From assembly GCA_977017575.1 (NCBI GenBank), contig CDRNVI010000170.1:62001-126000 (forward strand): 64,000 bases of DNA, read 5' to 3'. The position numbers and the translations under genes are program-made. Positions within the stretch are counted from its first letter, which is position 1. Each line of letters begins with the position of its first letter. Of the stretch, positions 3,566 through 48,660 are shown piece by piece. The notes beneath the pieces were generated by a model. That model did no database searches. It was not told the DNA's origin and saw nothing but the letters and a program-made list of their open reading frames with translations. The DNA is from Paramoeba atlantica (taxonomy: Eukaryota; Protista; Discosea).

Positions 3566-6150
3566 TTTTTTTTTTTTTTTTTTTTTTTTGGAGATGAAAG
3601 AGATTTTTATTCGAAAAAGATGGTCGTAAGAGAAGGGAATGGTTGCACATTTGGCAGAATATCTCACCCAGTGAGAGGAGGAACTGCAGAAAAAGGGGGT
3701 AGTACGTGTGGAAAAGAAGAGGGGGGAATGGAAATGTCATTTAGATTGAGAGATGATGAGAAGCACAGAGAATGATGGGTCAAAAGGGGGTTGCTGGGTT
3801 TTAGATTTTCCCGTATGCTCATCATGTGGTTTGCCATTGCTTTCATTAGTGCAGCTGAAATCTTCTTCTTTGCTGTTCTCAAGAAGAGGGGGAGGGGGTT
3901 GGCATCCAGGACCCGGTCGTTTTGGAGGGCAATTGAAGCGAGGGACCGTAGGAGTGCACTAATGTCAGGGGATATTCCACCACCTGAGGATGAAGATGCT
4001 GGAAGGAAGATGACTTCACCTTGGCGATCGGAAAGAGTTATTTGTTTAAGGGTCCGTTTCTCCTCAGGGGTGTCTCTGTCCCTTCCTGCATTAAAGTCTG
4101 TTTCAGTCAGACGTCTGTCCACATATTCTCTGCGTTTTATGATCCTGGCATGGTGTGCAGGTGAGAGGGTGTCGAGTGTGGGGTCAGAGTAGGTTTTGGT
4201 GGGTGTTTGGATCACACAACGAAAGCGGGGGGTTATGTGGGTTGACACAACTCGAACATCAATACACAGATCCTGGTCGCCTTGCCACTCACAGATTGTA
4301 AGATCAGGTTGCTTGTGTGACTTCCCAATTGGCTGGTAGGCTCCGTCTCGGATTGTTGTTTTTCCTGCCCAGTTGGCAATGTTCTTGAGTTCTTTCACGG
4401 AGAGCATGGTGTCTTCTCGGGTTCCTCTTCCACGACTGGTGCAGTCTGAGAGGTGGAGGGAGGATGCAGCACAGAGTTCTTTTTCACAAAATCCACACTT
4501 GACAGTCCCAAGTTCACAGAGAGCCCCAAGGTGTGGGTCAATGATGTCAAGCCTACATCGGTAGGCTGAGCGAAAATCTTCAGCATTTAAGGCTCGATAT
4601 GGCTTTGGCTCAGAGGTGTCCTTGTCTGGGTAGGCTGTCATCCACAAGTGGGTGGTGGGGCCAACCTCATTCTCACGGATTGCACAGCAGAGGTTTTTAT
4701 CTTGTGTTGGGTCCATGATCTTCTTTTTGACATCCTGAAGTTCACAGGAGGTGAACTTCTTCTGTGGTTTGTAGTTTTCTCCAGTGCCCATTGAGTCAGA
4801 TGGTGGCTCTGTCAATCGAGTTAGGAGCTCATGGACAGAGGTACCACTTGGCAGTTTCCACTCGCTCAAGATGAAGCTTTCAAAATGGTCATATGCTTGG
4901 TGGAGAGCCTGGCACTGGGGTGAGTCACTCTTCCAGAAGTCTTCAAAGAGGTTGATAAGTTCAGGTTTGAACTCAGAGCAGGATCAGTAAACTGAGATCC
5001 AGGAGCCAAGGAAGGCTGCTTGGTGGGTGTTCTGAGAGTAGCTCAAGCCACCACCACCTTTTGACTTTGGAAGGCCTGCAGCTTCTACTTGAGAGAGATG
5101 GAGTTCTTTGTTTGGATGCAGGTGGGGGACTTGGAGGAGGTTGAGGAGGTAATTGATGTTTGTTGTAGTGGTTTGCTTGATGAAGTCTTGGAAAGGGGTT
5201 AAAGAGAGAGGTGTTGTGCGACAGATGTATGTTAGTTTGGGTGTGATGGTTTTGACAAAAAGCTCAAGACTTTCATGGGGGTTGGAGAACATTATTAAAC
5301 AGTGGTCTTGCGATGCTTGTTGGTATTCTTGAGCAAGGGTATGAAGCCGCTTGGAAATTTGAGTGTTCGGCCCAATGGGTGACCCTAGAACTGTGATTAC
5401 TTCCGCCTTCCCAATGCCAAGATTTTTGAGGTCATTGCTCCTGGGCGCTTCGGGAGAGAAACAGACCATTTTGCCCCTTTCTGTGCCAAGTTTGAGGTTG
5501 GCATTTGGGAGGACACTCTGGATCTGAGTGGTGATTTCTGCAATGGCAACCAGGCTCCCACAAACAAATATATCATCAACAAAGAGGAGAAGAAGAAGTG
5601 CATTCAGTGGAGCATCAACCTTCTGAAAGATTGGATTAAGGACTCCATGAAATCCCAGACAGAAGAAAATTGTCCCGAGGGGATCTCCTTGCTGGACACC
5701 CTCCTCCATGGTGAGGGTGTGGTTCCGGTCATGAGAGAGGAGGGGTGTTGCTGAAGAATAGAAGGTGTAGAGGTATGGAAGTAATACAGGGGCCAGCTGG
5801 ACTGTGCTCTCAAAGATGGTTTTTCTTGAGATGGAATTGAAGGCATTAACAATGTCCAGTTTCGCGGCATAATGTTGTGGGTGGAGGTGGAGATAGGCTG
5901 TGATATTGCTTTGTGGACCATTTCTGCACCACTTGGCAAGCATACACCATATTGGTGGGACAATTTCTCAGGAATTCCCTCGTGTTGGACTTCAAGAACA
6001 AGTGCAATCACTGCCCACCTCTTGAGAACTTCAGCAACACCAATTGGACGGATCCCTTTGTCCCCTTTTGCCAGAGGAATGAAGAGAGAGGTTGCCATGA
6101 TGTTGTGTATGGTTTCATTGAGTCTTTGGTTGGTGATTAAGACTGTCAAT
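3566..6150 (-). mobile_element. CRE-clade non-LTR retrotransposon, 5'-truncated copy 1
   Basis: Poly(A) tail (poly-T 3564-3589) with AATAAA just upstream. RT motifs RPIGVAEVLKR, QYGV..GAEMVH, KLDIVNAFNSISR, GVQQGDPLG and FVDD are followed by CGFC..H..C and KQPDL...CIDV (RLE endonuclease). A 14-bp TSD is present. Homology to copy 2 ends at gtcaatt (~6151). Confidence 0.9.
3664..6149 (-). pseudogene. RT-zinc knuckle-RLE ORF of copy 1 (frameshift ~5900, premature TGA at 4984)
   Basis: ORF pieces 5604-6149, 4984-5943 and 3664-4869. Copy 2 has CGA where this copy has TGA. Confidence 0.85.
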
Positions 6151-6283: not shown

Positions 6284-7061
6284 GATTTTTTTCTCTTTCT
6301 TTTTATTTTTATTTTTTTTTGTTCAAAAAGATCAAGTGATATGGTTTTTTCTTTTTTTCCTTTTTCTTTTTTTCTCTCCTCTTCTCTTTTTTTTCTATTT
6401 TTATTTTTTGATTCTTTCTCCTTTTTTCTGATTTCTTTGAACTCACATAATGAAAAGGGTCTCTGTTTTGCAAACTCCAATGTGTGTGACTCTATTTGTT
6501 GTGAAGGAAGTTAAATTTTGATCATAGTTCAACTTCAATTGGTTTCTTCTGTTGGAAAGTGAACAATCACCATATATTCACCCTTGACAACAATCATTCT
6601 CTTGCCAACAAAAAATTGAAATTTCGTTTCCAGATCAAAAGTTGTTTCCTCTCAATGAGTTGTTTCAAAAATTTTGGTCCATTCTCCAATCTCTTTTTCA
6701 TGAACATCAATCTCAAAACTACTTTGTTGTGCAATGGAGGAGGGAGGGCCTTTCAGTTTTTGGAGAAAGTTTTTTATCCCTTTTCTGTTTCTTTCCAAGC
6801 AATTTGTTCCCATCCCCCCCAAAAAAAGTTTTTTTTTTTCTGAGACAGAGTCAGCTAAATTTATTCAGCTCACAAATAAAATTTTAAAGAAATGTCTTCG
6901 GGGAATTTCTCCCCCCCCCCCCCCCAAAAAAAAAGAGAAAAACAGAGAAAACCAAATTTTTCCAAAATGAATTTGAGTGTCACACAAACAAACTTCAATT
7001 GGAGCAAAAGAGTGTTTGAGGAAACTTTTTTCTTTTTTCTTTTGAAAATTAAAAAAAAAAA

Positions 7062-7125
7062 GCCACTAAAGGGGCTTGAACCCTTGACCACTAGGTTAAA
7101 AGCCTAGTGCTCGAGCTATAGTGGC
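7062..7125 (-). pseudogene. tRNA-Lys(UUU) with deleted D-loop
   Basis: Reverse complement GCCACTATAGCTC^GAGCACTAGGCTTTTAACCTAGTGGTCAAGGGTTCAAGCCCCTTTAGTGGC. The D-stem halves are directly fused; the other arms pair. Confidence 0.8.
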
Positions 7126-7324
7126 ATTTGTTGAAAAAAAGGTCAAATTTTTAGTGTGATGGGGGCTGATTTTGATGGAAGAAGGAAAAAGAAGAAAAAG
7201 ATCGGCAAACAAGGAAAAAAAAAAGATTTTTAATTCCTTCTTGAGCAAAACAACAAAGACAAAAGAAAACCCATTCAGTCAGCGAGATTTATCTTTTTTT
7301 CAACTTTTTTTTCAAAAAAAAAAT

Positions 7325-7397
7325 TGCTCATTACAGGGATCGAACCTGTGACCTCCGCGTTATTAGCACGGCGCTCTACCGACTAAGCTAAACGAGC
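7325..7397 (-). tRNA. tRNA-Ile: tRNA-Ile(AAU)
   Basis: Reverse complement GCTCGTTTAGCTTAGTCGGTAGAGCGCCGTGCTAATAACGCGGAGGTCACAGGTTCGATCCCTGTAATGAGCA forms a full cloverleaf. Confidence 0.9.
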
Positions 7398-7653
7398 ATT
7401 TCTGAAAAATGACCCAATTTTTTGGCTTTCCAGCCAGAAAAATTTCTGGAGAAACAGAAAAACAAAGTGAAAAAACAAAGAAAAGAGCAGAAAAAGGAAA
7501 AAAACAAAAATGAAAAAAGTGATTGGAGAAAATGAAGGTGAAAATCACTTTTTATTGTTAATTGACTCCATTTTTTTTTCTTTTTCAAGGGAAGGGAAAA
7601 CCTTTTCAAAAGTAAAATCGAATGATTTTTTTTCATTCAAAAAAAAATAATAG

Positions 7654-7836
7654 ATGTTAATCACGTGTGAGAAAAATGGACTTTAATCGTCGAGGGTGCT
7701 TTTTGCCTCGAGACTTGGATTCTGACGTCGAGGTCCATCAACTTGTTGATGGACAGAGACCCAAAGAATCCAAGTCGAGAAAGGAAAAAAGCACCAGAGA
7801 CTTGATTGACCATTTTTCTCACACGTGATTCAACAT
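7654..7836 (+). other. 183-nt imperfect palindrome/foldback with periodic G·A internal loops
   Basis: Paired blocks: 7659-7679/7810-7830 (21 bp), 7695-7704/7786-7795, 7712-7723/7765-7776 and 7733-7742/7745-7754. The apex is C-TT-G. Confidence 0.9.
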
Positions 7837-7861
7837 TTAATCATCTTTTCCATGCTGCAAA
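7836..7861 (+). repeat. Left inverted repeat flanking the tyrosine recombinase gene
   Basis: TTTAATCATCTTTTCCATGCTGCAAA matches the reverse complement of 9197-9222 at 25/26 positions. Confidence 0.85.
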
Positions 7862-7953
7862 GGAATTTTCAAAAAAAAGTTTTCTTGGAAATTAATCATT
7901 CATGTTGGTTGTCACAATTATTTGATTTTCTTTTCATTTTCATTTTTTCAAAA

Positions 7954-9081
7954 ATGGCGCAACACCAAATGTCAACTCGAGAGGAAAGACGAAGGAGGGT
8001 TGAAAACGGGGTCCCTGACCATGCAAAAGCCCTGACTGTTGACAACTGTGGGTTTGATCGATCTCGTAGGGCTGTTGAAGACTTTTTCGATCGACGAACC
8101 CCAGCACCAACAAGACGAGCAGTTCTCCATGCGGGTGCGCGTTTCGAAAACTTTCTTCAGCTGAAGACAGATGCTGGGTTGGATTATTCAATTAACGAAA
8201 AACTTTTAATTGAGTTTTTTGAGTCGTATCTCTGGTATTTGATCCACCCCCGAACACACGTGTGTGTCTTTGACTGTGGATCTTTTTTTCCAATCGTTGC
8301 ATACACAAAACGGTTCATCTACCTAAAATACGCGGTTGACCTTGGGCCGTGTCGTGAACTCAACAGACTCTTGAAAAAGGAAACCTTTGGGCACCAACCA
8401 ATGAAAAAGGAAATCTTCACTCTTGAGGAGTTGACCAAGTTTGTGGAACGGAAACCGCAAGATGGAGGAGAAAGACAAGAGTCCCTTTTGGTGCTGTGTT
8501 CCTTTTTTGGTTTGGGACGATCTGCTGAGGTCATCATGATGACGAAAGAAACTGTTTTGGTGAAAAGCGATTCTGTTGTTTTTTCTCTTTTCCGTTGTGC
8601 GAAGTCAAGGACCTTTCGAACCACAAAAGTTGTTGTCCCAAATGTTGGAAAGTTCGATACCGCTCGTGAATTTGCTGCCCACCTGGCTTCAATTCCTGAC
8701 AAACCTCGTTTGTGGTGGACCTGGAGACAAGGGAAGTTTGTTGAGCAACCAATGGGGAAGAACCAAATCACAGTGATTGCAAAGAAGGTTGCACTCTTTC
8801 TGCAGAAAGATCCTCCACTGTATGCTTCACACTCTTTCCGCCGATCCGGGGCTACAGCAATGGTTGAAGGGGGAGCCTCCACTGATCAACTGATGGTGTC
8901 TGGGGCTTGGGCTTCCCAACGTGTTGCACATGGTTATATTCAAGATTCTGACCGAGCTGCCAGAGAAAGAACAGAGATCTTGACTTCAACTTCTTCAAGT
9001 TCTCAATCGAGCTCATCTTCTGGGGTTCAACTGACCATTAATTTGGGAGATCTTGTCTCTCGAGAGAGGTTGGGTCATTAA
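7954..9081 (+). CDS. Tyrosine recombinase (phage-integrase fold), 375 aa
   Basis: Intact ORF from ATG 7954 with the catalytic set GLGRSAE (R), AKS (K), HSFRR (HxxR), GAW (W) and HGYI (Y). Confidence 0.9.
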   Translation: MAQHQMSTREERRRRVENGVPDHAKALTVDNCGFDRSRRAVEDFFDRRTPAPTRRAVLHAGARFENFLQLKTDAGLDYSINEKLLIEFFESYLWYLIHPRTHVCVFDCGSFFPIVAYTKRFIYLKYAVDLGPCRELNRLLKKETFGHQPMKKEIFTLEELTKFVERKPQDGGERQESLLVLCSFFGLGRSAEVIMMTKETVLVKSDSVVFSLFRCAKSRTFRTTKVVVPNVGKFDTAREFAAHLASIPDKPRLWWTWRQGKFVEQPMGKNQITVIAKKVALFLQKDPPLYASHSFRRSGATAMVEGGASTDQLMVSGAWASQRVAHGYIQDSDRAARERTEILTSTSSSSQSSSSSGVQLTINLGDLVSRERLGH

Positions 9082-9196
9082 TGTTAATGAGCAATGTCAA
9101 CAATAAATACTGATAATGTCTTGAAATTCAATTATTTTTCATAATTGCAAGGGAACAAAAGACCATTTATTTCTGAATTTGGGCAAACTCAGTGAG

Positions 9197-9222
9197 TTTG
9201 CTGCATGGAAAAGATGATTAAA
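9197..9222 (-). repeat. Right inverted repeat flanking the tyrosine recombinase gene
   Basis: TTTGCTGCATGGAAAAGATGATTAAA. It overlaps a small perfect palindrome GCAAACTCA-G-TGAGTTTGC at 9183-9201. Confidence 0.85.
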
Positions 9223-9290
9223 GAAAAAATTGTTTTCAGGCAAAAAAAAAAAGAGGAAAAAATTCAAAAACAAAACAAAGAAAAAAAATT

Positions 9291-9374
9291 CGTCGGAAGC
9301 AGGATTTGAACCTACGCCCCGTTTCCAGGATGTGATTTCTAGTCACACGTCTTAGACCACTCGACCATTCCGAC
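9291..9374 (-). tRNA. tRNA-Ser: tRNA-Ser(AGA)
   Basis: Reverse complement GTCGGAA..TGTGA-CTAGAAA-TCACA, long variable arm, GTAGGTTCAAATCCTGC, TTCCGACG. Confidence 0.9.
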
Positions 9375-9379
9375 ATTTC

Positions 9380-43354: not shown

Positions 43355-43473
43355 GTCTTCGGTCATACCCAGTTGAAAGCACCCGATCCCATCAGAACTC
43401 GGAAGTTAAGCAGCTGTGGGCTCGGTTAGTAGAATGGTGGGTGACCACATTCGAATCCCGAGTGCTGAAGACC
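43355..43473 (+). rRNA. 5S rRNA: 5S rRNA
   Basis: GTCTTC...GAAGAC terminal helix, CGGTCATACC, CCCGATCCCATCAGAACTCGGAAGTTAAGC and GGTTAGTA, followed by a T-rich terminator. Confidence 0.92.
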
Positions 43474-43553: not shown

Positions 43554-46500
43554 CAATGAAAGAGATTTTTATTCGAAATAGATGGTCGTAAGAGAAGGGA
43601 ATGGTTCTCACCCAGTGAGAGGAGGAACTGCAGAAAAAGGGGGTAGTACATGTGGAAAGAAGAGGGGGGAATGGAAATGTCATTTGGATTGAGAGATGAT
43701 GAGAAGCACAGAGAGTGATGGGTCAAAAGGGGGTTGCTGGGTTTTAGATTTTCCTGTATGCTCATCATGTGGTTTGCCATTGCTTTCATTAGTGCAGCTG
43801 AAATCTTCTTCTTTGCTGTTCTTAAGAAGAGGGGGAGGGGGTTGGCATCCAGGACCTGGTTGTTTTGGAGGGCAATTGAGGTGAGGGATCGTAGGAGTGC
43901 ACTAATGTCAGGGGATATTCCACCACCTGAGGATGAAGATGCTGGAAGGAAGATGACTTCACCTTGGAGAAACGGAAAGAGTTATTTGTTTAAGGGTCTG
44001 TTTCTCCTCAGGGGTGTCTCTGCCCCTTCCTGCATTAAAGTCTGTTTCAGTCAGACATCTGTCCACATATTCTCTGCATTTCATGATCCTGGCATGGTGT
44101 GCAGCAGGTGAGAGGGTGTCGAGTATGGGGGGTCAGAGTGGGTTTTGGTGGGTGTTTGGATCACACAGCGAAAGTGGGGGGTTTTGTGGGTTGACACAAC
44201 TCGGACATCAATACACAGATCCTGGTCACCTTGCCACTCGCAGATTGTAAGATCAGGTTGCTTGTGTGACTTCCCGATTGGCCGGTAGGCTCCATCTCAG
44301 ATTGTTGTTTTTCCCGCCCAGCTGGCAATGTTCTTGAGTTCATCACGGAGAGCATGGTGTCTTCTTGTGTGGTTCCTCTTCCACGACTGGTGCAATCTGA
44401 GAGGTGGAGGGAGGATGCAGCACAGAGTTCTTTTTCACAGAATCCACACTTGACAGTCCCAAGTTCGCAGAGAGCCCCAAGGTGTGGGTCAACTATGTCA
44501 AGCCTACATCGGTAGGCTGAGCGAAAATCTTCAGCATTTAAGGCTTGATATGGCTTTGGCCCAGAGGTGTCCTTGTCTGGGTAGGCTGTCATCCACAAGT
44601 GGGTGGTGGGGCCAACCTCATTCTCACAGATTGCACGGCAGAGGTTTTTGTCTTGTGTTGGGTCCATGATCTTCTTTTTGACATCCTGAAGTTCACAGGA
44701 GGTGAACTTCTTCTGTGGTTTGTAGTTTTCTCCAGTGCCCATTGAGTCAGATGGTGGCTCTGTCAATCGAGTTAGGAGCTCATGGACAGAGGTACCACTT
44801 GGCAGTTTCCACTCGCTCAAGACGAAGCTTTCAAAATGGTCATATGCTTGGTGGAGAGCCTGGTGCTGGGGTGAGTCACTCTTCCAGAAGTCTTCAAAGA
44901 GGTTGATAAGTTCAGGTTTGAACTCAGAGCAGGATCGGTAGACTGAGATCCAGGAGCCAAGGAAGGCTGCTTGGTGGGTGTTCTGAGAGTAGCTCAAGCC
45001 ACCACCACCTTTTGACTTTGGAAGGCCTGCAGCTTCTACTCGAGAGAGATGGAGTTCTTTGTTTGGATGCAGGTGGGGGACTTGGAGGGGGTTGAGGAGG
45101 TAATTGATGTTTGTTGTAGTGGTTTGCTTGATGAAGTCTTGGAAAGGGGTTAAAGAGAGAGGTGTTGTGTGACAGATGTATGTTAGTTTGGGTGTGATGG
45201 TTTTAACAAAAAGCTCGAGACTTTCATGGGGGTTGGAGAACATTATTAAACAGTGGTCTTGTGATGCTTGTTGGTATTCTTGAGCAAGGGTGTGAAGCCA
45301 CTTGGAAATTTGAGTGTTCAGCCCAATGGGTGACCCTAGAACTGTGATTACTTCCGCCTTCCCAATGCCAAGATTTTTGAGGTCATTGCTCCTGGGCGCT
45401 TCAGGAGAGAAACAGACCATTTTGCCCCTTTCTGTGCCAAGTTTGAGGTTGGCATTTGGGAGGACACTCTGGATCTGAGTGGTGATTTCTGCAATGGCAA
45501 CCAGGCTCCCACAAACAAATATATCATCGACAAAGAAGAGAAGAAGAAGTGCATTCAGTGGAGCATCAACCTTCTGAAAGATTGGATTGAGGATTCCATG
45601 AAATCCCAGACAAAAGAAAATTGTCCCGAGGGGATCTCCTTGCTGGACACCCTCCTCCATGGTGAGGGTGTGGTTCCGGTCATGAGAGAGTGAGGGGTGT
45701 TACCGAAGAATAGAAGGTGTAGAGGTATGGAAGTAATACAGGGGCCAGCTGGACTGTGCTCTCAAAGATGGTTTTTCTTGAGATGGAATTGAAGGCATTA
45801 ACAATGTCCAGTTTCGCGGCATAATGTTGTGGGTGGAGGTGGAGATAGGCTGTGATATTGCTTTGTGGACCATTTCTGCACCACTTGGCAAGCATACACC
45901 ATACTGATGGGACAATTTCTCAGGAATTCCCTCGTGTTGGACTTCAAGAACAAGTGCAATCGCTGCCCACCTCTTGAGAACTTCAGCAACACCAATTGGA
46001 CGGATCCCTTTGTCCCCTTTTGCCAGAGGAATGAAGAGAGAGGTTGCCATGATGTTGTGTATGGTTTCATTGAGTTTTTGATTGGTGATTAAGACAGTCA
46101 ATTCTTTGAGGGTTGAGTGGAGTTCTCGGTCTGTGCATAGGAGTGTGACAAACTCATAAGACGTGCGGCCTTTTGGAAGTCTCTGAAGGGCCAGATCAAG
46201 TGAGTCAAAGGACTGAAACTCATCTTGTTCAAGGATTGCTGGTTTCCAGTCAGGAATTTCGGCTCGATCTGGTGGAGTCCACGCCTGCTCAGATCTTGGG
46301 TAGAGGTTCTTCACAGTTTCACGATTTTCTGGGACTGAGAGATCCCTGAATCCACTCTTGGATTGAAGCTTCCTTGCAGCTTTGGAGAGATGTCCTTTTC
46401 TGACCTCTTCAATAATCTGGTCTGCCTTGGTTTTCTTGGTGGACTTCTGCCTCCTCTTTTGCTTGAGTTTGCTGAGCTCACCCTCAAGTTTTTTGTGGAG

Positions 46501-48660
46501 TCTCTCCCACTCAAAATTTCGCACCATGGTGCATCGAGATTTCACTTCTTTCATTCCTTGAGTACCCCTTCTAAGGCAGCCAAAGATCCATTTTGGGAGG
46601 AGGATCAGGAGTTGGGGTATCTTATGAAAGAGGTGTCATACAGCACAAAAAGTTTTGATGACTGTATCACGAAGGCAGAGTGGTACTGAGTCCATGTAGC
46701 AGAGGGGGATGTGTTTTGAGAAGGAGTCTCCTTCAAGAGAGAGGATGAAGTTCATTGTAGTCTCTTCTTTGCTTCCATGAGGAAGGGTTGTAGAGCGCCC
46801 ATGATTGAAGAAGAGTTGTTGGATGTGTTGTGGGTCTGGGTCAAGGATGGGTGTGATTCTCCAGGTGTTGTCAGGGCATCCTCTGTGTACTGCTAAACTT
46901 GTGATCCTATCTGCCAAAGAGTTGTTCTTGCGGTTTCTCCAGTTAATATGGTTTTCAGGGCTTGGGAGAATGGATGAGAGAGTGGACAATTTCCTTGTTC
47001 TCATGAACGACACAGAGTGATGAGCTTCCAACACACCATCCATTTGGGTTGGTAGCAACAGATCCATCCCCACAGATGAAAAAGAAGTTGTCTTTGACAT
47101 TTGTGAGCGAGATTTCGGAAGGCTGTGGTGCAGGTTTCCAGTGTTGCCAGAACTGTAGGAGAAAGGCTATTCTCCCTGTGCTACTTGCGATTCGAGAGAA
47201 GGGGGATGATATCTCATCTTGCTTTGTTTGTTGAGCATTTTTGAAATCTGAGGAGAGAATGGGAGTAAGGTCTTAGTTTTTCTGTTGGCCACCAAAGAAG
47301 TGGTTGATTCCAAGTCCAAGGAGGTCACAAGCTCTGCATGTTTGGAGGGAGCTTGTTCTTGTGCGATCCAAGTTTCTGAAGTGGGGGACAGTTAAGACTA
47401 TATCTTCAAAGGAGCCATTTTTGAAGAGTTCAAGGATAAGGGAGAGGGAGGGAGGAGTTTGTTGAAAAGAAGGTGGGCCATGAGAAGAAGGGCGGTGGGA
47501 AAGTTGTTGGGGAGGGGGAGCGAGAGGGGAGTGAGAGGGGGTGTGGGAAGGGAGGTGGTGAGGTGGGCTTGGGGGGGGGCAAATGAGGTGGATGGGAAGG
47601 AGGGTGGAGAGGTGTGTGAGGTGAGGGGTGAGATGGGGGAGGAGGAAAAGGGGTGATGGGATGGTTTTCTGTGCTGTTGTGGCATTGTGTTGAACAATAA
47701 TGCATTTGGCAGTGGTTACAGGAGATGTGGGAGCCAACTTCTGCTTTACCATTGCATTCAGGGTTGTTACATGAAGGGGGAGGGGTGCTGGAGGGATTGA
47801 GATCAGGATTAAGATTGAGATGAAGAGTGGGATAGGGAATGGGGGAGGGGAGTGGGGAGGGAGGGGGGGAGGGAAGTGGGGAGGGAGGGTGGGAGGGGGG
47901 ATTGGAGGGAGAGCAGGGAGGGGAGGTTAGGGATGGGAGAGGTTGGGGGGGGGGGGAGGAAGAGGGTGACAGAGAGTTTGTGACTTCCTGTGGTGGGAAA
48001 AGGAGCAGAATGTAAGGAGGCACTTCTCACATTGGGAGACTATTACTTTTTGGTGTTGGCCTCTGCATCTTCAGTACGAGCAATTGCCAAGGAATTTTGG
48101 AGGATGTGAAGTTGTCTTCTGGGCCTGAGGATTGTCCATTCGATTTAGTTCTTTTTCTCTTTCTTTTCTGTTTCTTTCATTCTTTTCTTTTTCTGATTTT
48201 TCTCTTTCTTCCTCTTTTTTTCCATTCTTTTTCCTTCCTGTTTTTTTTCCTCCTCTATTTTCTTTTTCTTTTTGTTCTCTTCCTTTCTTTTCTCTCTTTC
48301 TTTGTTGTTTCTGCTCCTGCTCTCTTGCTTTTTTGGGGTTCTCTTTGTCTTTTTCCTTCCTTTTCTCTTTCTCTGACCTTTTCTTTTTTTCCTTCTTTTT
48401 CTTTCTCTTGCTCTCCTTCTTGGCTGCAACTCTTTTCTGAGTGAAGTTTTGGGAACCGAAAGTTTTCTGTGCTATCTGGTTTGAGGGTGCCCAGGATCAA
48501 GAGGCATGGCTGTGGCAATCTCAAAAATCTTTTGTTATGTCAGGGGTGGGGAGCAGAGCTTTTGAAGGTGGGGTTTGAGAGGAAGAGGGGAGAGTGGGTA
48601 TTGATTCGGATGAAGTGGGAAGTGATTGGTGGTGTGGTTGGTTTGTGGTTTGTTGTTTGT
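43519..48660 (-). mobile_element. CRE-clade non-LTR retrotransposon, near full-length copy 2 (disrupted)
   Basis: Poly-T 43519-43553. Highly similar to copy 1 over 43554-46100. It continues 5' with GHLSKAARKL, LPKWIFG..RRG, an RNase H-like segment, Pro-rich linkers and two C..C..C..C...[FY]CS zinc fingers. The 5' boundary is uncertain. Confidence 0.85.

Follow-up and report, generated by a model that had tools for sequence, protein, structure and literature searches.

A probable Crypton-type transposon of Paramoeba atlantica and the hairpin-bearing left end of its tyrosine recombinase family

Cryptons, the elements of Goodwin et al. (2003) and of Kojima and Jurka (2011, PMC3212892), are the least understood class of eukaryotic DNA transposon, and their ends have been called hard to define. 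The subject of this study is a unit of approximately 1.57 kb (7648-9221) within a 64,000-nucleotide (nt) stretch of Paramoeba atlantica DNA (assembly GCA_977017575.1, contig CDRNVI010000170.1, positions 62,001 to 126,000), referred to here at its full length as the window. The locus is probably a Crypton-type DNA transposon, present as an intact copy that was active recently, and its sole gene encodes a Cre-like tyrosine recombinase (YR). Cryptons have been described as lacking terminal inverted repeats (TIRs) and as having short or no direct repeats, with non-autonomous copies keeping several hundred bp of both ends (PMC3212892). Animal CryptonA/I elements encode the YR only and are reported to show no terminal repeats even among 50 copies; in non-autonomous derivatives, 438 bp of 5′ sequence and 260 bp of 3′ sequence are retained (PMC3212892). 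A 2026 paper presents Cryptons without TIRs, and some families without any description of repeats (PMC13465315). No account of a Crypton hairpin or palindrome was found in the limited literature covered; Repbase Reports, for instance, may contain earlier notes.

The extent of the unit is given by comparison of copies. A protein search with the window YR gave five relatives, four from ENA assembly ERZ24900291 and the fifth from a JGI metagenome. A second copy, on contig L003, matches the window from 7646 to 9229 at 99.4%, and a base-by-base alignment between 7646 and 9221 contains six substitutions and one inserted T. The flanks of the two copies are unrelated, with identity collapsing to the left of 7646 and to the right of 9221. 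Due to the inserted nucleotide, the recombinase frame of the L003 copy is broken. The mobile unit runs from ...TAA/TAGATGTTAATCAC... (the slash marking the boundary), just 5′ of the hairpin, to ...GATGATTAA at the far end of the right inverted repeat. From the AATAG that precedes the hairpin through to the end of that repeat, the sequence moves as one block. The hairpin is thus part of the mobile unit, and the left inverted repeat is approximately 190 nt internal. The parts of the unit are as follows.

7648-7650, plus strand: left microhomology TAA, repeated at the right end (9219-9221); the sequence common with L003 starts at 7646
7649-7658, plus strand: left-end core AATAGATGTT, family consensus AATAG-NNN-TT, the proposed crossover and spacer region
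7651-7839, plus strand: imperfect hairpin (foldback) of 189 nt with apical loop CTTG, identified by folding
7690-7800, plus strand: six motifs on one strand (TCGAGG, TCGAGA or CAGAGA), with starts at 7690, 7708, 7728, 7754, 7775 and 7795
7831-7835, plus strand: spacer B, CAACA, between the right arm of the hairpin and the left inverted repeat
7836-7861, plus strand: left inverted repeat (IR-L), subterminal, matching the right repeat at 25/26 positions
7862-7953, plus strand: leader of 92 nt from IR-L to the start codon, read from the sequence only and presumably holding a promoter or 5′ untranslated region
7954-9081, plus strand: YR gene of 375 amino acids, uninterrupted from the ATG at 7954 to the stop at 9081
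9183-9201, no strand: palindrome of 19 bp (9+1+9), lying 3′ of the stop codon and running into the right repeat
9197-9222, plus strand: right inverted repeat (IR-R); the element ends inside it, at 9221 (...GATGATTAA)

Most of these parts had been recognised in an earlier note on this DNA. The intact 375-amino-acid YR with its catalytic residues, the 25/26 inverted repeats and the 19-bp palindrome overlapping the right repeat were all recovered at the positions given there, and the pair of inverted repeats is found by self-BLAST of a 2.7-kb region at E = 3.9e-7. The foldback is likewise real. The same note placed the start of the left repeat exactly at the end of the foldback; this needs a small correction, as the 5-nt spacer CAACA separates the repeat from the perfect arm, with weaker pairing continuing to 7839. 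The 19-bp palindrome, which might serve as a 3′-end or terminator hairpin or as a protein site, is identical in a copy with 75% identity (L001:6866-6884). Most members also have a perfect small palindrome, with arms of 7-12 bp, after the stop codon and before the right repeat, including L006, L007 (2186-2213), L009 (1715-1738), L013 (4686-4708) and L017 (7134-7148). The palindrome centre CTCAGTGAG is common to the window and the mealybug element, L013.

The copy in the window appears to be young, as its observed/expected CpG ratio is 0.72 compared with 0.35 across the whole window; the open reading frames (ORFs) of neighbouring retroelements range from 0.22 to 0.53. The CpG richness of the unit beside CpG-depleted neighbours, as previously claimed, is evident from these values. 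The proposal of a self-contained and recently mobile YR-only element has also stood, with the hairpin now belonging to it. Other copies were sought and found in ERZ24900291, with L003 nearly identical and L001, L002 and L004 diverged or broken. Short putative microhomologies occur at the ends of the element, TAA on both sides of the window copy (7648-7650 and 9219-9221) and TAATAA for the L003 copy. Among relatives, these are AAAATTA in L002 and AAACAA in L009, with none clear in the wasp Eretmocerus; those found are A-rich.

The older relatives in ERZ24900291 are L001 (75% amino acid identity, truncated), L004 (48%, frameshifted) and L002 (47%, uninterrupted ORF). The L001 copy (L001:4400-6910) is without the hairpin, the left repeat and the first codons. 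It adjoins a second recombinase gene which is just 30% identical; AT-rich palindromes lie at 4417-4516, approximately 430-520 nt upstream of that gene. The neighbour belongs to a different subfamily, nested in or adjacent to this copy. In the L002 protein (P0003, L002:6001-7023) both catalytic arginines are changed, with GLGH for GLGR and HSFCC for HSFRR. This copy is probably inactive, the arginine replacements being the changes expected from CpG deamination. The L003 copy sits in repeat-rich DNA, and its immediate downstream flank (L003:5540-5600) reads ...GHYFRRS..., which recalls the HSFRRS motif of the recombinase. Pfam returned nothing in this flanking ORF and a weak copia-type gag match in the neighbouring ORF.

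The proposed catalytic set of the recombinase, taken from alignments, comprises R189, K217, H293-x-x-R296, W319 and Y328, with K217 assigned by position only. The residues R189, H293, R296, W319 and Y328 align with R173, H289, R292, W315 and Y324 of Cre. Within the profile alignment, HSFRR...GGW...Y pairs with Cre H289/R292, W315 and Y324, and GLGRSxE pairs with Cre R173. The family profile matches Cre at E 1.4e-11; a direct phmmer search of the window protein against the PDB gave no matches. The Pfam family Phage_integrase (PF00589) is matched only weakly by the window protein (E 3.4e-4); 14 of 16 relatives match it. No further Pfam domain was detected, DUF3504 and GCR1_C included, in the window protein (at E ≤ 1) or the 16 relatives. 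The AlphaFold model has a mean confidence (pLDDT) of 85.9, and its top 27 Foldseek matches in the PDB are all Cre or the engineered variant Tre, with template modelling (TM) scores of 0.54-0.68 over approximately 320-350 columns. The best of these are full-length Cre-loxP complexes (TM 0.58-0.67 over about 335 columns); XerH, XerA, the Tn1549 integrase and the integron integrase come next in order. The model predicts a two-domain Cre-like fold, composed of a helical core-binding domain and a catalytic domain. There is no room in the unit for a reverse transcriptase (RT) or other enzyme, as the 1.57 kb contain no ORF beyond the YR gene.

An exhaustive, profile-free search for homologues returned 1555 at E ≤ 1e-3 and 288 at E ≤ 1e-10, and the flanking DNA was examined for a subset. 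A search with a six-sequence alignment gave four metagenome loci, of which L009 has the full layout. The layout AATAG / hairpin / 4-5 nt / IR-L / YR / IR-R was found in 11 further independent elements at 23-50% protein identity. In all close or moderately distant relatives examined, AATAG-NNN-TT is followed by a hairpin of 120-190 nt, a spacer of 4-5 nt, IR-L, a YR on the same strand and a terminal IR-R. This order of parts, including the small palindrome, is conserved in a deep family which extends from an amoebozoan-like protist to insects. The hairpin is accompanied by IR-L and IR-R in L002, L006, L007, L009, L013, L016 and L017/18, and by the left end in L005, L008 and L014/15. The contig of L008 stops before the right end, and the right repeat of L005 is degenerate or unclear. 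The members compare with the window element as follows.

L002: approximately 47% protein identity; inverted repeat put by different tools at about 26 nt (92%) to 31 nt (87%)
L006: approximately 38% protein identity; inverted repeat of 54 nt
L007: approximately 36% protein identity; inverted repeat of 58 nt
L009: 37% protein identity; inverted repeat of 25 nt, perfect
L016: 33% protein identity; full layout
L014/L015: 27% protein identity; hairpin and left end
L005 and L008: 31-38% protein identity; hairpin and left end
L013, from the mealybug Planococcus citri: 23-29% protein identity; full layout
L017/L018, from the wasp Eretmocerus hayati: approximately 30% (for its 50% cluster representative); full layout

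The left-end motif reads AATAGCTATT in L006, L007, L008, L014/15 and L016, AATAGTCTTT in L009, AATAGTATATT in the Planococcus element L013 and TAATAGTAGATT in the Eretmocerus elements L017/18. The equivalents of spacer B are CAACA (L006), CACAG (L007), CTCT (L002) and CATGG (L005, L014). Two copies on different chromosomes of E. hayati are 99.8% identical over 3.7 kb, beginning with TAATAG and the hairpin and ending at the right repeat. As a result of this near-identity, the same kind of ends is proven in an independent lineage. The contigs of L006 and L015 both have (A)ATAGCTATT as their very first bases, and that of L006 ends exactly at its right repeat. Such breaks are expected of a graph assembler at the boundaries of multi-copy elements. 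The named relatives of the window protein are multi-copy insect proteins, and one relative comes from a transcriptome assembly. An IMG/VR scan returned no relatives, and the unit is without viral genes.

In L008 (150-560), two different recombinase elements stand head-to-head across a palindromic AATAGCTATT. The hairpin (approximately 115 nt) and recombinase N-terminus of the second element are readable on the minus strand. This looks like the insertion of one element into the attachment site of the other. In L005 (2240-2429), the probable degenerate right end is followed by another AATAG and then GTCGAGG-type motifs; tentatively, a second element may start here in head-to-tail arrangement.

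The foldback of the window is far more stable than its composition predicts. As DNA it folds at -58 kcal/mol compared with -19.6 +/- 3.3 for dinucleotide shuffles (z = -11.7; 0/200 shuffles equal it), and z is -14.6 with RNA parameters. Its outer arms, 7659-7679 and 7810-7830, are perfect over 21 nt each. The hairpins of all eleven elements (that of the window and ten others) have folding z values from -7.7 to -15.3. The arms are unrelated in sequence between members, and each arm pairs with its own partner; it is the pairing, not the sequence, which is kept in these hairpins. Pairing was judged from per-sequence folds and ladder diagrams, the RNAalifold consensus on MAFFT alignments of the hairpins being poor (-5.4 kcal/mol, with the 3′ arms misaligned). 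The window, L002, L005, L006 and L007 also share the primary sequence of one short stem, GGATTCT/AGAATCC, to which L009 conforms more loosely.

In the window fold, the six motifs pair to form three all-purine internal loops (GAG/AGA, GA/GA and GAG/AGA), which are approximately 20-22 nt, or two helical turns, apart. Across ten hairpins, 23/26 symmetric 2x2 or 3x3 loops are all-purine, mostly GA opposite GA, and none of the 26 is all-pyrimidine. Motifs of the CGAG type are found on the sense strand of both arms in each hairpin. Copying of one arm from the other would erase these mismatches; that they are conserved, and always on the coding strand, indicates either selection on a folded sense strand or an oriented array of protein sites superimposed on the palindrome. 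At the hairpin, Rfam returned no family and only chance-level matches to microRNAs and small nucleolar RNAs. No solo hairpins or derivatives resembling miniature inverted-repeat transposable elements (MITEs) were found in the window or the loci then examined, the one extra match being the second L008 element.

Two members have hairpins with peculiarities of their own. In L016 (240-340), the halves of the GGATTCT/AGAATCC stem are swapped between the arms, with GAAACC in the 5′ arm and GGATTTC in the 3′ arm, and the purine loops are still on the sense strand; the swap may be the trace of an inversion of the hairpin interior. In L014 (1-135), the apex of the hairpin repeats 9 nt (ACAATAGCT) of its own left-end core, a feature seen in no other member.

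From the Crypton model and the geometry of the ends, the element would excise as a circle. Circularisation would combine the right repeat, hairpin and left repeat into one continuous imperfect palindrome of 240-300 bp. The joint would read ...GATGATTAA and then TAGATGTTAATCAC..., perhaps with TAA added. The joined right and left ends would create a classical YR core site, in which inverted arms enclose a spacer of approximately 6 bp containing TAG. The following arm matches were read from the sequences of the modelled joints.

Window junction: arm TGATTAA, spacer TAGATG, arm TTAATCA; 7/7 matching
L002 junction: arm GTGATAAAA, spacer TTAGTC, arm TTTTATCAC; 9/9 matching
L009 junction: arm CGACACTTAAA, spacer ATAGTC, arm TTTAGTTGTCG; 9/11 matching
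L007 junction: 15-nt arm, spacer of about 8 nt, 15-nt arm; 13/15 matching

A recombinase on the left arm would cut the top strand at ...AA/TAG, where the boundary of the element falls, and strand exchange would follow with A-rich target sites sharing 3-7 bp of microhomology. The A-rich end repeats TAA, TAATAA, AAAATTA and AAACAA overlap this ...AA/TAG point, in keeping with the microhomology reported for Cryptons, in which short direct repeats measure 4-6 bp. The use of AATAG as the crossover is supported by the head-to-head arrangement of L008 and the tentative one of L005. It can be inferred with good support that recombination takes place at the AATAG core and that the joined ends form the site.

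The least certain step is the form in which the palindrome acts, most likely folded, either as an extruded cruciform or as the single-stranded sense strand. The modelled circle junctions fold as one hairpin, in which the joint borders an asymmetric internal loop on its 5′ side. This loop has approximately 9 nt with ATAG opposite 4-5 nt (CAACA, CACAG or CTCT), spacer B being the short counterpart of the AATAG loop across the palindrome. For the window itself, the global fold picks a competing pairing, and the geometry is the same. The folded form would present the crossover in the asymmetric loop (approximately 9 nt opposite approximately 5 nt), with the three tandem G.A loops, two helical turns apart, as putative recognition marks. 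The analysis leans towards the folded form because pairing is kept without sequence conservation, the mismatches are strand-specific and self-stabilising, and the 9-versus-5-nt asymmetry is conserved, each of these being a hallmark of sites of the attC and CTX attP kind. Recombination of a folded strand had been suggested in the earlier note. Circumstantial support has come from the co-varying pairing, the conserved tandem G.A mismatches of the sense strand and the position of the end at the asymmetric loop; use of the folded strand is plausible but unproven. A wider proposal, that a deep Crypton clade from protists to insects recombines via a folded DNA site, with AATAG in the asymmetric loop and the G.A loops as identity marks, is possible and offered only tentatively; such a site would be the eukaryotic counterpart of integron attC and CTX-phi attP(+).

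Several points weigh against the interpretation of the locus as an active Crypton-type transposon with a folded recombination site. The window element is represented by two insertions only, and their flanking repeats of 3 and 6 bp, in A-rich DNA, could be due to chance; the Eretmocerus copies are without a clear direct repeat. For the window element, neither a circle junction nor an empty site or a tandem copy was observed. The Pfam score of the window protein (20.9 bits) is below the curated cut-off of 27.1, and placement among the named Crypton groups is tentative. The six motifs repeat approximately every 20 bp on one strand, which would equally fit an array of protein sites on double-stranded DNA, and the hairpin, located on the sense strand upstream of the ORF, could act as RNA. 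The former would leave the transposon the same with a hairpin region that is only ever double-stranded, the six CGAG-type motifs serving as accessory (arm-type or iteron-like) sites without folding. The right arm of the hairpin and IR-L could then be extra recombinase sites, providing four arms for a tetramer in the integrated element. The motif starts give a period of 18-26 bp, with a spacing of 21-22 nt read in L007 and L009, and the junction already reads as a normal duplex core site. The primary-sequence conservation of GGATTCT/AGAATCC in five or six members suggests a sequence-specific protein contact. However, protein sites of 7-15 bp do not explain the complementarity of the arms over 60-90 bp despite their unrelated sequences, and the purine-purine mismatches of the sense strand (23/26 symmetric loops) amount to a stable single-strand fold. 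Purely duplex use of the region is a credible possibility, if a doubtful one. Action as RNA, whether as a 5′ leader or noncoding RNA regulating the recombinase, as a source of small RNAs or as a helper of the recombinase, would agree with the invariable placement of the hairpin on the coding strand, where it precedes the start codon by 100-250 nt, and with the relative from a transcriptome assembly. Tandem G.A pairs in the CGAG context are also stable in RNA. This explanation is nevertheless unlikely; the integrated element begins approximately 3 nt before the hairpin, so there is no evident upstream promoter, and no Rfam family is matched. Nor does the hairpin interior support a guide or bridge-RNA role: neither matches nor complements of the AATAG core or flanks recur in it consistently, L014 alone repeating 9 nt.

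The remaining explanations concern the nature of the unit itself. Tyrosine recombinases invert DNA between inverted sites, and the gene is flanked by 26-bp inverted repeats, from which the earlier note had proposed a self-inverting switch. This is very improbable and has been set aside, as the ORF has a single orientation relative to the hairpin in 13/13 elements and both pairs of near-identical copies are co-linear. Moreover, the right repeat stands at the very end of the element, adjoining host DNA, and so presents only a half site in the integrated state. The other proposal of that note, a TIR-bearing transposon, would correspond to a cut-and-paste element ending at the 26-bp repeats, beside which the hairpin is an unrelated foldback or MITE. 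The 25/26 match does look TIR-like, but comparison of copies puts the left end at AATAG, with the left repeat approximately 190 nt internal, and in two species the hairpin lies within the segment that independent copies have in common. The hairpin is also at the same place across the family, with no solo hairpins in the window or the loci then examined, and this explanation has next to no credibility. A derivative of DIRS-like elements without RT, copied from RNA by an RT in trans, could use the hairpin and repeats as inverted terminal repeats and internal complementary region. The host looks amoebozoan, a group with known DIRS1, RT-bearing elements are nearby and the structure is on the sense strand. 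The amoebozoan placement from sequence is weak, as a sulfate transporter of the related assembly has dictyostelids for its nearest named relatives at just 33% identity. This is again most improbable, given that YR-only units of 1.5-3.7 kb without RT, RNase H or methyltransferase occur in many unrelated samples and in insects, and that their ends are precise and of the same kind across the family, with no poly(A) tail or split direct repeat.

The preferred classification is that of a Crypton. The element appears to fit the operational definition, encoding a YR only, without RT, true TIRs or long direct repeats and with short microhomologies at the ends or none. Its termini are not inverted copies of each other, the left consisting of AATAG and the hairpin and the right of IR-R. 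By domain content and published descriptions, it seems to resemble the animal CryptonA/I pattern most closely. Features in common are the YR as sole enzyme, the lack of an extra C-terminal domain and the presumed circle intermediate. Unlike Cryptons as published, for which neither terminal repeats nor terminal structures are recorded in the papers covered, the ends of the window family are defined by the AATAG core, the 120-190-nt hairpin with G.A loops and the pair of subterminal and terminal inverted repeats. The long 5′ requirement of the animal elements is what a hairpin and left repeat would impose. The earlier description of an undescribed minimal YR element was too strong at family level, the element fitting the Crypton class, and it is only of the shared end architecture that no description was found. 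The element is best regarded as one more member of an established class, and the AATAG / G.A-loop hairpin / repeat architecture as an apparently new, mechanistically informative property of that class.

Other groups were considered and rejected. CryptonF is excluded as there is no GCR1_C match in the window protein (E ≤ 1) or 16 relatives, and a DUF3504-type CryptonA as the window protein and 14/16 relatives match PF00589 only. CryptonS elements have TATGG termini, direct repeats of 5-6 bp and a conserved C-terminal region; the termini here are AATAG...TTAA(A). DIRS, Ngaro and VIPER elements were rejected on the absence of RT in the shared 1.57 kb and a different repeat layout, and the integrases of Polinton-like viruses, virophages and giant viruses on the absence of IMG/VR relatives and of viral genes in the unit.

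Among other known systems, Cre-loxP and Xer-dif have the same two-domain C-clamp fold and R-K-H-R-W-Y site, with inverted arms, predicted here at 7-15 bp, around a spacer of approximately 6 bp. They differ in that identity is approximately 12-14%, the core site here is placed in a 240-300-bp palindrome and the partner is a loose A-rich target. The integron attC and CTX-phi attP(+) sites are likewise strand-specific imperfect hairpins with conserved unpaired bases, in which the crossover is in or beside an asymmetric unpaired region between two arms formed by pairing of inverted repeats. This resemblance is structural only. Those sites are bacterial and have a known single-stranded stage (conjugation, phage or replication), whereas the window element is not known to have such a stage or to exchange single strands, and tandem G.A loops are not features of attC. 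DIRS1 also encodes a YR, is found in Amoebozoa, has ends which make sense as a circle and carries inverted repeats with an internal complementary segment; the window unit, at 1.57 kb, lacks RT, RNase H and methyltransferase and follows another repeat logic. The 2-micron Flp/FRT system shares a YR gene between inverted repeats. In contrast, the window unit is integrated at varied chromosomal sites, its repeats are of 26 bp with one terminal, and no inverted isomers were seen.

A conserved end signature would help to delimit and annotate Cryptons, and it predicts the recombination site, including arms, spacer and cleavage position. The mechanism lends itself to direct tests, the enzyme being small and Cre-like and the site spanning approximately 300 bp. 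If a folded substrate were true, this would be the first eukaryotic tyrosine recombination known to the authors that is structure-specific and not sequence-specific. A compact pair of recombinase and site could also be of interest for genome engineering.

The element is located between two tRNA genes, which are flanking context outside it.

7324-7398, minus strand: tRNA-Ile(AAT)
9290-9375, minus strand: tRNA-Ser(AGA)

Both flanks are present as the earlier note had stated. Insertion targeted to tRNA genes was rejected, as there is no tRNA gene in the four other loci of the same assembly, and the location appears incidental. A further tRNA is called by Rfam at 7061-7125 on the minus strand (59 bits) and is absent from the ARAGORN output.

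The window is eukaryotic in content and also contains a ribosomal DNA (rDNA) unit, a 5S gene, eight tRNA genes, a Ty3-type pol gene and a non-long-terminal-repeat (non-LTR) RT. The rDNA unit is single and complete (23114-29940), with a small subunit (SSU) gene of 2105 nt, a 5.8S gene and a large subunit gene of 4043 nt, and is placed amid tRNA genes. The SSU is approximately 270 nt longer than the Rfam model. Retroelements lie around the rDNA unit, the 5S gene (43355-43473) is 13 kb away, and nothing in the window points clearly to an rDNA tandem array. Strong CpG depletion, with observed/expected ratios of 0.22-0.38, marks a non-LTR RT ORF and several large ORFs that have no Pfam matches (3664-5943 and 44161-46554), and the rRNA genes have ratios of 0.79-0.92, which suggests that repeats in this genome are cytosine-methylated.

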